Positions 13,145 to 19,100 are shown, counted from the first letter of the stretch. The stretch is DNA of 64,000 nt from Macrostomum lignano (GCA_002269645.1 NIVC01002402.1:35291-99290), one strand, 5' to 3'. The notes: generated by a model from the sequence alone, not told the origin. Translations and numbers: made by a program.

Positions 13145-16100
13145 TCACAGGCCGCAGCTGTTGTAGCAGTCGGCCAGACTATTGAAGTAGTTCTGGTTCC
13201 TGCTGCAGCCGAAGTTCACCATGAACTTGCACTGGTTTTGCCGCTTGCTATAAAAGTACACGCGGGCGAGGCGGACCCGGCTCTTATCGGAGCAGAAGCC
13301 GCGGTCCTGTGGCAGCTCGCAGTGGGCCGGCAGGCTGGCGGCGTGGATGTAGGCTGTGGGTGGGGGGCAGGTTTCAATGCGTTTCTGTGGTCCTCTGAGT
13401 GCCAGTTCTGGGTGTCTCTGGGGCCTTCGGGTGGGGGCAGGTTTCAATGCGTTTCTGTGGTCCTCTGAGTGCCAGTTCTGAGTGTCTCTGGGGCCTTCGG
13501 GTGGGGGCAGGTTTCAATGCGTTTCTGTGGTCCTCTGAGTGCCATGTTCTGAGTGTCTCTGGGGCCTTCGTGTGGGGGCAGGTTTCAATGCGTTTCTGTG
13601 GTCCTCTGAGTGCCAGTTCTGAGTGTCTCTGGGGCCTTCGGGTGGGGGCAGGTTTCAATGCGTTTCTGTGGTCCTCTGAGTGCCAGTTCTGAGTGTCTCT
13701 GGGGCCACTCACACAGGGTCTTGACTTCCCTCCCACAGGCCAATATTTATGAACATAGATTCGAACTCGGGTACTCTGGGCGGACCCGTTAGCCGCTGCA
13801 CTGCTCTGGCTCGATGGGTTTTCAATTATTTTTTCGACAAGGAATTCGAACAGAATGATGCATTCATGGTTTGAATACATGCAAATTTAGGAATATTGTT
13901 TTGATTTCGGACATTGTTAGGGACTACAAAAAAATTACCAGCATAAGACTGATTGTTACTTTTCATTGAAGACGTCGATAGATCAAAAGTGTAGAAATTT
14001 TTAGGGAAAATTCTAGAAAACAGACTCTCTAAAATAAAAAATACGTCCAAAGTCTGCGAAAAACATCCATCTCCGGCGACTTACTTGGCGAGGACTCAAA
14101 GCTTGGATGGCCAACCTCAGGCGCTGTGTTGATGCACCTGGCCACTGGCGGCTGGCACTTCAGCAGGACGTCGTTCTCTGCTATGATCCGTCTCATTTCG
14201 ATATCCAGGATGTAGCTATAGTTCCGCATCACCCGGTCGCGGCACTCAGCGTCCTCCAGTAGGAAGCAGCGCGATTGGTACAGGGTGTACTTTTTGCACC
14301 TGACAACCTGACAGGTTTTTTTTCGATGGGGGGGTCAAAGCTCAGTTGTGCTCCGATGTGTTTAGCACTGCTTTGAGAAGTTCTCAGCTTTCGAGCTGGC
14401 CGCCCTATTTATAGATGCATGCAGTATTAGCCTGCTCTATGTGGAAACAGAGTACATGTACTGGAAACTTCACATCATTCTTACGCATCACGTGAGGCCA
14501 GCATGACTCAGACCTTAAATGAACTCCTAGTACAGTTTATCAAGGACGCTTTGACAGTGCACAGATCCAAATGCATGATTTTGTTGCCGGGGTGAATAGT
14601 GCAATTTGTGGCCTCAGGTGGCTAATGGGTTAAAATTATTCGTTTCCAATCCAAATGCTATTTATAGAAGTCCTTGTACAACTGAACGGCCCGGACTCAC
14701 CTCGCACGGGTCAAGGATGCCGCGCACGCAATAGTTCTGGCACTCCGTCAGCGAGTTGAAGATGTTGCCATTGTCCAGCTGGCAGCCGTAGTGTGCGAAC
14801 CACTTGCACTTCATCTCGACCAGGTCGAAGGTCCATTTCGACCGACTGGAGGAGCACTTCGGCTGGTTGCGCCAGTCCAGCTGCTGCCGACACTTGGGCG
14901 GCAGCTGCTCCGACGACTTCACAGTCGATATCTGCCTCATTGGAGGCGTCGGCGGCTGCGTTGGCGGCTGCGTCGGCGGCTCCGTGGATGGCTGCGGCTG
15001 TCTCTGCAATGCGCAATATGATAGAATTTCCTACTGAGCTGGCACTGCTCACTGGGCAACATTTGATTGAGAAAGGGGGTCCTAGCCGACTGGCACAGTG
15101 CATTCAGTGCTTGCCTCACCTTCTCAATGTAACTGTGAGCTAACCATAGATTAAGCTGAGCTCCAGCTAAAGGGGCTGCAGCTCTGAGCTCCTGCTCACC
15201 CTGCTGTGATTGGGCAGCAACTCTGCACCCTGCTGTGATTGGCCAGCAACTCTGAGCTCCTGCTCACCCTGCTGTGATTGGTTAGCAACTCTGAGCTCCT
15301 GCTCACCCTGCTGTGATTGGGCAGCAACTCTGAGCTCCAGCTCACCCTGCTGTGATTGGGCAGCAACTCTGAGCTCCAGTTGGAATACGGGAATGGGGGT
15401 TGCAACCCGCCTACCCACCACAGTGGCGCAGCTGCCTACCAATTCTGCAGACTCAATTCGTCTGGAGGCAACTCGAACTTCGCTCGGGCGACGGCGGCTC
15501 TCTGTAGTCGGCTGGAGCGTCGCCAGCGTTGTCCGGGGGGCAGGGTCTGCAATTGAAATTGTCCGGGGGACAGGGTCTGCAATTGAAATTGTCCGGGGGA
15601 CAGGGTCTGCAATTGAAATTGTCCGGGGGACAGGGTCTGCAATTGAAATTGCCCAGTGGGCAGGGTCTGCAATTGAAATTGTCCGGGGGGCAGGGTCTAC
15701 AATTGAAATTGTCCGGGGGGGCAGCCGTACGCAGCCTTCAGATTATCAATTATCAATCGAGAATAAGAGAATTCTGTATTGAAAACTCACGGATTCTTCG
15801 ATGCCGGCCAGACGCATCATGTACCTCCGGTTTTCGGTGGCCAGCTCGTCCCGGACCTGCTTGGGCAGCCAGGCGGGCAAATTCTCCCAGTAGTCTCTGG
15901 TCACGTGCTCGAACGCTGCCTGAGTTGTAGCTGCTGGTTGCTGTAAATGTTTAAAGATTTTGATAGAATCCATTAATTTTCGACACTAATATCTGCATTT
16001 CTACTAAGAGTAGCTTTTAAGCGAAGGACTAACCGAATTCGCTCTGCCAAACATTTGATCCGCGGCCATCCGATTGTCCAACTCGAACTGCCGCCTGACA

Positions 16101-19100
16101 TCGGCGTTTAGCCAGGAGGGCAGCGCCTCCCAGTGCGTGCGGGTCACGTGCTCAGCTGGTGGCTCAGTTGTGGCGTCCGCCTGCGGATGGATGGGTTGGG
16201 ATGAAGAGAAACTGTGTGTCTGTCCGTCTGTCTGTCTGTCTGTCTGTCTGTCTGTCTGTCTGTCTGTCTGTCTGTCTGTGTGTCTGTCTGTCTGTCTGTC
16301 TGCCTGTATGTCTGTCTGTCTGTCTGTATGTCTGTCTGTCTGTCTGTCTGTCTGTCTGTCTGTCTGTCTGTCTGTCTGTCTGTCTGTCTGTCTGTCTGTC
16401 TGTCTGTCTGTCTGTCTGTATGTCTGTCTGTCTGTCTGTCTGTCTGTCTGTCTGTCTGTCTGTCTGTCTGTCTGTTTGTCTGTCTGTCTGTCTGTCTGTT
16501 TGTCTGTCTGTCTGTCTGTCTGTCTGTCTGTCTGTCTGTCTGTCTGTCTGTCCGTCTCTGTCTGTCTGTCTTAGTGTCTGTCTGTCTGTCTTAGTGTCTG
16601 TCTGTCTGTCTTAGTGTCTGTCTGTCTGTCTGTCTGTCTGTCTGTCTGTCCGTCTCTGTCTGTCTGTCTGTCTGTCTGTCTGTCTGTCTGTCTGTCTGTC
16701 TGTCTGTCTGTCTTAGTGTCTGTCTGTCTGTCTTAGTGTCTGTCTGTCTGTCTGTCTGTCTGTCTGTCTGTCTGTCTGTCTGTCTGTCTGTCTGTCTGTC
16801 TGTCTGTCTGTCTTGTCTGTCTGTCTGTTTGTCTGTCTGTCTGTCTGTCTGTCTGTCTGTCTGTCTGTCTGTCTGTCTGTCTGTCTGTCTGTCTGTCTGT
16901 CTGTCTGTCTGTCTGTCTGTCTGTCTGTGTGTCTGTGTGTCTGTCTGTGTGTCTGTCTGTCTGTCTGTCTGTGTGTCTGTCTGTCTGTCTGTCTGTCTGT
17001 CTGTCTGTCTGTTTGTCTGTCTGTCTGTCTGTCTGTCTGTCTGTCTGTCTGTCTGTCTGTCTGTCTGTCTGTCTGTCTGTCTTCTCGTCTTCTAGTCACA
17101 TTACCTCAGTCCCAGTGTTGCTCAGTCTTCTCACGAATTCCCGATTTTCTCGCTGAATCTCCTCCTTGACCTTTAAATTGACCCAATTGGGAAAATTTTC
17201 CCAATAGTCGCGGGTCACGTGCTCCACAGCTGGCGTTGCTGTCGTCGAAGACTGTTGTTGTAGCGGATTTAAATAACTTTGAATTGATTCAGCGATAAAT
17301 ATCAAATCGTGTGGTTCAACAATTCACATGACAGAATACGGGCGTAACCAGAATTTGTACCATTAGACACATCTCGCTCAGATCCCTCACACCTCTGGCA
17401 CCCCCATCCCTCATCCCTCGCCCCTGTCAATCCAAGCTTGAGGCCGCCCGGGACCTCTCGCACACTCTACACATCCCTAACACACGCCGCAACCTACGCA
17501 TCCCCTTTACCCCAAGCACACCCCTTGCCCCAAACACACCCCTTGCCCCAAACACACCCCTTGCCCCTAACACACCCCTTGCCCCAAAGCACACCCCTTG
17601 CCCCAAACACACCCCTTGCCCCAAGCACACCCCTTGCTCCAAACACACCCCTTGCCCCAAACACACCCCTTGCCCCTAACACACCCTTGCCCCAAAGCAC
17701 ACCCCTTGCCATAAACACACCCCTTGCCCCTAACACACCCCTTGCCCCAAGCACACCACTTGCCCCAAGCACACCCCTTGCCCCAAACACACCCCTTGCC
17801 CCAAACCCACCCCTTGCCCCAAACACACCCCTTGCCCCAAGCACACCCCTTGCCCCAAACACACCCCTTGCCCCAAACACACCCCTTGCCCCAAACACAC
17901 CCCTTGCCATAAACACACCCCTTGCCCCTAACACACCCCTTGCCCCAAGCACACCACTTGCCCCAAGCACACCCCTTGCCCCAAACACACCCCTTGCCCC
18001 AAACCCACCCCTTGCCCCAAACACACCCTTGCCCCAAGCACACCCCTTGCCCCAAACACACCCCTTGCCCCAAACACACCCCTTGCCCCAAACACACCCC
18101 TTGCCATAAACACACCCCTTGCCCCTAACACACCCCTTGCCCCAAGCACACCACTTGCCCCAAGCACACCCCTTGCCCCAAACACACCCCTTGCCCCAAA
18201 CCCACCCCTTGCCCCAAACACACCCCTTGCCCCAAACACACCCCTTGCCCCAAACACACCCCTTGCCCCAAACACACCCCTTGCCCCAAACACACCCCTT
18301 GCCCCAAACACACCCCTTGCCCCAAAGCACACCCCTTGCCCCAAACACACCCCTTGCCCCTAACACACCCCTTGCCCCAAGCACACCCCTTGCCCCAAGT
18401 ACACCCCTTACCTCTCGCATACCCATAGCTCATACCTGTCTCAGCACCCCAGTACAGCAACAGTGTCTTCACGTCTTCACCTAGCAAAATAACCGCGCCT
18501 CACCGTTCTTGGCACCCCAATCCGCTGCCTGACGCTCTCCTGATTGTCTAGCTCAAACTGCTGGCGAACCTGATGGGGCAGCCAAGCTGGAAGCTGGTCG
18601 GCCGGCCAGTAGGCTTTGGTCACGTGATCCGGCTCCGGTGCTTGAGTTGACTGGGCCTGTGTAGAGAAGAAAGTTTATAATAGAAGCTGTTCTGTCCTAC
18701 CCTGTCCTAAATTGTCCTGTCCTGTCCTGTCCTGTCCTGTCCTGTCCTATCCTGTCCTGTCCTGTCCTGTCCTGTCCTGTCCTGTCCTGTCCTGTCCTGT
18801 CCTGTCCTGTCCTGTCCTATCCTGTCCTGTCCTGTCCTGTCCTGTCCTGTCCTATCCTGCCCAGTTCTGCCCTCTCCTCTCCTCTCCTATCCTCTCCTAT
18901 CCTGTCCTATCCTGTTATGTTCTGCCCTGTCCTGTTCTGTCCTGTCCTGTCCTGTCCTGTCCTGTCCTGTCCTGTCCTGTTATGTTCTGCCCTGTCCTGT
19001 TCTGTCCTGTCCTGTCCTGTCCTGTCCTGTCCTGTCCAGTCCTGTCCTGTCCTCTCCTATCCTGTCCTGTCCTGTCCTGTCCTGTCCTCTCCTCTCCTCT

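Follow-up and report, generated by a model that had tools for sequence, protein, structure and literature searches.

The symmetric-exon modules described by Patthy, among them EGF, Kunitz and FN3, are mobile units of metazoan proteins, mostly of phase 1-1, that recur in many unrelated genes. Symmetric exons also build the micro-exon genes (MEGs) of schistosomes, whose exons span 6-36 nt and whose protein products are varied by exon skipping. Among secreted multi-Kunitz proteins, whether papilin, TFPI, bikunin or the flatworm families, we know of none that carries an N-terminal repeat of the kind described here. We analyzed a stretch of 64,000 nucleotides from the flatworm Macrostomum lignano (GCA_002269645.1 NIVC01002402.1:35291-99290; the whole stretch is hereafter the 64-kb window), whose minus strand carries four exons with one copy each of a short protein module, upstream of two Kunitz domains in the same predicted product.

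The host protein of this module resembles papilin, TFPI and bikunin in being apparently secreted, with a signal peptide and multiple six-Cys Kunitz/BPTI domains, but differs from these classical multi-Kunitz proteins in the Ser at P1 of its Kunitz domains, instead of Lys/Arg, and in their changed loop lengths. The module itself resembles the Patthy modules in that one module occupies one symmetric exon of a secreted mosaic protein. Unlike the phase 1-1 modules, however, its exons are of phase 0-0 and it has been seen in one gene only, and for these reasons it looks like the outcome of intragenic exon duplication. The host gene also shares with the MEGs a general plan, that of flatworm secreted orphan proteins built of symmetric exons, although the module exons are 147-153 nt long and carry a repeated motif, and splicing variation is known for the MEGs only. 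Expanded flatworm Kunitz families have been discussed previously (bioRxiv 10.1101/2024.02.05.578899).

Our preferred reading, to which we assign a probability of roughly 0.6, is that the locus encodes an intact secreted bi-Kunitz protein whose N-terminal half bears a four-copy, exon-duplicated motif, and that this motif would form hairpins serving as a docking or spacer arm.

The module exons and their host gene

An initial annotation of the window, made from its sequence, had proposed four minus-strand exons encoding the same ~50-aa module. These exons and their peptides prove exact to the base: translation of the four intervals reproduces the peptides, every exon has AG immediately before it and GT immediately after, and all lengths are multiples of 3, with phase 0 maintained throughout and inside one continuous 523-codon frame. 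The proposed arrangement of one module per symmetric phase-0 exon is likewise seen in all four. A six-frame regular-expression scan of the 64-kb window returned exactly four copies, and a local hmmsearch using their profile (--max, E<=50) recovered them at 84.9-90.4 bits, the next best open reading frame (ORF) scoring 8 bits. Neither method detected a fifth, degenerate or decayed copy in the window, and a half-module suspected in a 13-residue stretch of exon 2 escaped hmmsearch detection at E<=50. Pairwise BLASTP among the copies gives 32-51% identity (E 2e-10 to 4e-17), and eight alignment columns are invariant (H, V, T, W, P, W, V, N). These data confirm a four-copy repeat far beyond chance. 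Each copy opens with a Thr/Pro/Ala/Ser/Gln-rich stretch of 9-11 residues, corresponding to the T/P linker noted at the outset, and cysteine is absent from all four, as had also been observed; the accompanying remark that such a lack is unusual for an extracellular protein was overstated, Cys-free extracellular repeats not being unusual in themselves.

Together with five further exons, the four module exons form a complete gene model on the minus strand (19768-13145, ~6.6 kb, nine exons, 523 aa), with the following features:

Exon 1, 19721..19768, minus strand: ATG and first 16 codons, N-terminal part of the signal peptide; donor CTG/gtaagc
Exon 2, 19272..19463, minus strand: 192 nt, phase 0-0; end of the signal peptide (IISAGGSRA), then an acidic Thr/Ala/Pro-rich stretch
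Exon 3, module copy 1, 18504..18656, minus strand: 153 nt, phase 0-0, 51 residues, with a 2-residue insertion past the first Trp; borders cacag/GCCCAG..AGAACG/gtgagg
Exon 4, module copy 2, 17105..17251, minus strand: 147 nt, phase 0-0; borders aacag/TCTTCG..ACTGAG/gtaatg
Exon 5, module copy 3, 16034..16180, minus strand: 147 nt, phase 0-0; borders ccgcag/GCGGAC..AATTCG/gttagt
Exon 6, module copy 4, 15791..15940, minus strand: 150 nt, phase 0-0, the copy modeled by AlphaFold2; borders ttacag/CAACCA..GAATCC/gtgagt
Exon 7, 14701..15003, minus strand: 303 nt, phase 0-0; Pro/Thr/Gln linker (19 residues marked), then Kunitz domain 1 (six Cys, P1 = Ser)
Exon 8, 14085..14307, minus strand: 223 nt, ending in phase 1; Cys-rich segment
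Exon 9, 13145..13353, minus strand: Kunitz domain 2 (six Cys, P1 = Ser, 4-residue insertion after Cys2) and TGA stop
AATAAA hexamer, 12959..12964, minus strand: putative polyadenylation signal, ~180 nt past the stop
Repeat arrays of this gene, 16212-17082, 17510-18409, 18687-19183 and 13358-13706: within introns

Seven of the nine exons are of phase 0-0. The product comprises, in order, a signal peptide (called by inspection of the N-terminus), an acidic Thr/Ala/Pro stretch, the four modules, a Pro/Thr linker, a Kunitz domain, a six-Cys segment and a second Kunitz domain followed by the stop. A Pfam scan of the 523-aa product finds two stretches of Kunitz_BPTI (PF00014; 53.8 bits, cut-off 21) and no family besides it. 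Both Kunitz domains keep all six Cys when aligned to BPTI, with altered loop lengths, and neither has a basic residue at P1, as inhibitors of the trypsin type usually do; given the Ser at P1 and the altered loops, we doubt that they inhibit trypsin in the classical manner. The segment between them has the pattern C-x4-C-x9-C-x7-C-x32-C-x6-C, formed by exon 8 plus the Cys of DPCE at the end of exon 7, and finds no match in Pfam or the PDB. The introns of the gene are packed with micro- and minisatellites: (CTGT)218, an 18-mer in 50 copies, (CTGTC)99 and a 70-mer in 5 copies.

When the full-length product was used as a query, a single database protein was returned, UniRef A0A1I8F4T2 (P0002), also from M. 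lignano. It is 100% identical to the product over exons 1 and 2, sharing the exon 1 Met and the exon 1/exon 2 junction, with exon 2 corresponding to its residues 84-148, and it confirms both that the sequence is of flatworm origin and two splice junctions of the gene model. Past exon 2 it strings together pieces of copies 1 and 4, the exon of Kunitz domain 1, and exons 8 and 9, read in changing frames. Compared with window positions 13145-19968, it reads through the 5' untranslated region, has neither start nor stop codon, and carries some real substitutions. Judged by its sequence, A0A1I8F4T2 is a frame-garbled version of this locus, or of a copy nearly identical to it, and the garbling most likely stems from an indel-rich assembly. 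The module is missing from protein databases because this sole entry is read out of frame across the repeat, and since the entry is frame-garbled, its omission of copies 2 and 3 is no evidence of exon skipping. A Pfam scan at E<=1 failed to recover the domain in the UniRef name of the entry, 'DUF5703_N domain-containing protein'. We looked for the DNA of this database paralog or allele and found none on record, and literature searches for the accession and for Macrostomum Kunitz or secreted inhibitors yielded nothing on this gene.

The exons were read from sequence alone, and the database model of the locus leaves out two of the four copies; they might in principle be chance ORFs or the remains of a decaying pseudogene. 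Against this stand nine consecutive exons with canonical borders, which join in an uninterrupted frame from the signal peptide to a terminal stop and contain two Kunitz domains above threshold, and the conservation of the four copies despite unrelated introns. We regard a spurious or decaying origin as highly improbable. The four exons appear instead to be genuine coding exons of one compact gene of M. lignano or a very close relative, and their initial assignment to a secreted modular protein is well borne out by these same features.

Constraint on the core and origin of the copies

A codon-level comparison among the four copies shows that conservation is concentrated in a core of 28 codons, with the consensus [ED]HVT[RK]x[YH]W..[LF]PxW[LV]xxxV[RK]x[EQ][FIL]xx[DE]N[RQ]. 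Within this core, mean identity is 51%, synonymous divergence (dS) is ~0.95 and the ratio of nonsynonymous to synonymous divergence (dN/dS) is ~0.44, whereas the last 12 residues of each exon, the tail, are 14% identical with a dN/dS of ~0.96. The module had been described as ~50 aa long; its conserved part is only ~28 residues. The claim that selection maintains the module stands for the core, which has been held under moderate purifying selection since the copies arose, and falls for the tail, from which the signal is absent.

Pooled dS between copies is 0.95-1.39. The duplications are thus old, with synonymous sites near saturation, and the intron sequences flanking the copies are unrelated (20-42% identity over 40 nt). 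Given near-saturated synonymous sites, unrelated introns and the lack of copies elsewhere, we interpret the copies as the product of an old tandem exon duplication within the gene.

A part of the conservation may lie at the level of DNA or RNA. The 9-mer CACGTGACC, which constitutes the His-Val-Thr codons of the core and holds an E-box palindrome, does not differ by a single nucleotide among the four copies, with exact matches at:

15899-15907, minus strand: CACGTGACC in module copy 4
16142-16150, minus strand: CACGTGACC in module copy 3
17213-17221, minus strand: CACGTGACC in module copy 2
18618-18626, minus strand: CACGTGACC in module copy 1

It occurs nowhere else in the 64-kb window, against 0.27 occurrences expected, and its invariance given the amino acids and local codon usage has P ~1e-4, while the invariant P, V and N residues vary at synonymous sites among the copies. 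The 9-mer might accordingly be read as an exonic splicing enhancer or a transcription-factor site. This test is post hoc, however, and CAC, GTG and ACC are simply preferred codons, each being the commonest local codon for its own residue. Moreover, the 28 codons are conserved with many synonymous differences, which fits selection at the protein level, so that a nucleic-acid function could at most supplement the protein explanation and not replace it. We think such a contribution improbable.

Relatives of the module and its predicted structure

The module had been put forward as belonging to no recognized family, with a profile search and a structural comparison suggested as checks for a known domain, and neither check produced a confident match. 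Pfam scans, run on the single copies and on the array, yielded only noise below threshold (DUF2267 at E 0.017, DUF6031 at E 0.08-0.16, and the villin headpiece, VHP, PF02209, at E 0.14). The 199-aa array found no match among 5.8e9 word-indexed proteins, and an exhaustive profile search of 1.84e9 cluster representatives found no real relative. Against PDB sequences the best match to the module profile had E 1.6, and a Foldseek search of the PDB reached a meaningless best E of 6.9. Metagenome contigs gave 8 pattern matches, of which 0 were confirmed. Overall, these data show the module to be a genuine, previously undescribed sequence family of an ordinary kind, namely an internal repeat that is restricted to one lineage and lies in a secreted, rapidly evolving protein of flatworms.

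Two candidates from these searches were rejected. The one match in the exhaustive profile search (P0001, E 6e-13) is a 955-aa repeat protein whose unit 'GWLPHQDRAQL' fits 11 residues of copy 1 nine times over; it has no counterpart of the EHVT..YW half, its hhalign probability is 17%, and we consider it an artefact. In a viral-contig locus (L001), the string 'DALPSWLPHQ' lies in a short ORF of a non-coding-looking region and is a chance match.

The sub-threshold VHP match deserved closer scrutiny. A 19-residue segment of the module resembles MTRSAFANLPLWKQQNLKK of villin HP35 (PDB 1vii/1yrf), the two sharing (M/V)-T-R-x-x-(F/W)-x-N-L-P-x-W-x4-(L/V)-(K/R) with identical spacing, where the HP35 counterpart reads MTRSAFANLPLW-KQQN-LKK (sequence checked against PDB 1vii). 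Pfam aligns VHP positions 13-24 to 12 residues of copy 4 (12.6 bits), hhalign of the module profile against HP35 alone covers 19 columns with a pairwise P of 7.5e-4 and a probability of 25%, and both VHP and the module are small Cys-free helical units of ~35 residues, centered on aromatic side chains. The Pfam score nevertheless falls well below the cut-off of 27 bits and was obtained with the concatenated array only, single copies giving no match. When the comparison is made against an alignment of 8 VHP sequences (database villins together with PDB-verified dematin and abLIM headpieces), the hhalign probability drops to 1.3% with a score of 11.7, which is equaled or exceeded by 20 of 300 column-shuffled controls, and the LP of LPxW is not kept in dematin or abLIM. 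The structural expectations fare no better: the Thr/Pro linker sits where helix 1 of VHP (F47, F51) belongs, with Phe51 aligned to a conserved Glu/Asp; the C-terminal GLF (Leu-Phe) of VHP is missing; the module model has two helices where the VHP core, with its Phe47/Phe51/Phe58 triad, has three; and the module retrieves no VHP chain from the PDB, either by sequence or by Foldseek. The biological settings also differ, VHP being a single C-terminal, cytoplasmic, F-actin-binding domain and the module a fourfold tandem repeat behind a signal peptide, in a host protein for which an extracellular location is favored because of its signal-peptide-like N-terminus and disulfide-type Kunitz domains. 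On the strength of the profile comparison, the shuffled controls and the missing helix 1 and GLF, we reject VHP membership; descent of the module from the VHP fold, as a very divergent extracellular derivative, is extremely unlikely, and we put the resemblance down to a chance match of a local motif or, at most, to small Trp-centered helical units having converged.

Structure prediction suggests that the core motif is probably helical. From a single sequence, AlphaFold2 models the 199-aa array with a long helix in every copy, at a predicted local distance difference test score (pLDDT) of 54 and a predicted template modeling score (pTM) of 0.34. For copy 4 with the four-copy alignment, pLDDT rises to 76, and the model comprises a disordered Thr/Pro linker, a short helix at residues 15-19 (RDYWE), a loop (NLPAWLP) and an 18-residue helix at 27-44. 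The main competing interpretation is that the repeat is a short linear motif in a disordered, glycosylated arm, such as a peptide ligand, a recognition motif or a peptide precursor. The small number of conserved residues is in keeping with this idea, tail and linker evolving nearly freely, as are the low confidence of the single-sequence array model and the want of any structural neighbor in the PDB by Foldseek. By contrast, hydrophobic and aromatic residues take up most of the conserved positions, with a spacing that a helix would allow (V, Y/H, W, L/F, P, W, L/V, V), the four-copy alignment raises the confidence of the model and yields defined helices, and the sequence has no regular dibasic or Gly-Lys-Arg processing sites flanking the copies. 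We therefore see a linear motif as an unlikely explanation, albeit one to be taken seriously, and favor the helical hairpin of our preferred reading.

Mobility, proposed role and genomic surroundings

The initial annotation had also presented the module as the best candidate in the window for a new shuffleable domain. The exon structure has the form expected of a mobile module, with one module on each of four symmetric (phase 0-0) exons. Mobile modules further occupy at least two unrelated contexts, and no second context was found for this one, be it in the window, among the 1.84e9 representatives and 5.8e9 proteins, or in viral and metagenome sequences, Macrostomum gene models being poor. With the module in no other gene of the window and no real match among the representatives, the description as shuffleable lacks support, and intragenic tandem exon duplication is the origin to which the data point.

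Under our preferred reading, each copy would adopt a compact helix-loop-helix hairpin, either by itself or on a partner, and the invariant residues V, W, P, W and V could pack there into a tiny aromatic core. Four such hairpins, each with a variable helical tail, would be strung on potentially O-glycosylated Thr/Pro-rich linkers, and the array might act as a set of multivalent docking or spacing units that present the Kunitz half of the protein on extracellular matrix, a secretion or a surface. Such a docking or spacer role for these atypical Kunitz domains (P1 = Ser) is inferred only. Because all module exons are of phase 0-0, copy number can be changed by exon skipping or duplication without a break in frame.

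Several points weigh against this reading. Copies 2 and 3 are missing from A0A1I8F4T2, the sole external model, which is itself garbled and unreliable, and their splice junctions are defined by sequence signals alone. The structure prediction draws on an alignment of four sequences, and the single-sequence array model is poor, so that an autonomous fold is not established. The dN/dS of the core amounts to moderate constraint only. Finally, flatworm transcriptomes are thinly represented in protein databases, and the apparent lack of relatives may partly reflect sampling.

A bolder version of the proposal is that the motif is an autonomous, Trp/Pro-clasped helix-loop-helix mini-domain of ~35 residues, confined to macrostomids, which acts as a variable-copy adaptor targeting the atypical Kunitz domains to an extracellular substrate. 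We hold this version to be doubtful; if true, it would be a documented case in which an extracellular domain arose de novo and was amplified at the level of exons.

The remainder of the window is rich in repeats and contains further secreted-type genes. A 118-bp satellite (98.7 tandem copies, 99% identity) fills positions 1-11650 and runs off the start of the window, and at least 20 further large repeat arrays lie elsewhere in it. When translated, such repeats yield long spurious ORFs, and database entries like P0001 probably have the same origin. A papilin-like secreted gene is found at ~47900-54470 on the minus strand, 28 kb upstream of the module gene and on the same strand; it contains at least seven Kunitz domains, a WAP domain, I-set Ig domains and an antistasin-like repeat, together with a signal-peptide-like ORF at 54270-54467, and P1 is the canonical Lys (GPCKA) in one or more of these Kunitz domains. 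Exons of a fibrinogen C-terminal domain occur at 32076-32821, within a minus-strand region at ~30030-33190, where two similar Cys-containing N-terminal ORFs, 30030-30299 and 32763-33185, have in common the sequence '...SDxECAxKCAQxGxxLSYSFINGVCVL', which suggests tandem fibrinogen-related genes. An intronless 279-aa ORF (21888-22727, minus strand) combines a Cys-rich N-terminal half with two hydrophobic, transmembrane-like segments; it has no Pfam match, and its exact sequence has no entry in the gene-position collection. A short interstitial telomere-like stretch, cctaacctaaccctaaccct, at ~21770-21795 on the minus strand adjoins a CT-rich low-complexity block.

The immediate gain from this analysis is one of annotation, a corrected 523-aa gene model, and by itself it neither opens nor settles a major question. 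It does provide a clean case, resolved throughout, of a repeat with a restricted taxonomic range, one motif occupying each symmetric exon and constraint being measurable over 28 residues. Error-prone flatworm gene models hide such families from the databases, and A0A1I8F4T2 would illustrate how assembly indels corrupt the M. lignano proteome. Should the motif fold on its own, it would be among the smallest Cys-free extracellular units, and would offer a tractable case of domain birth by exon duplication in an experimentally accessible flatworm.

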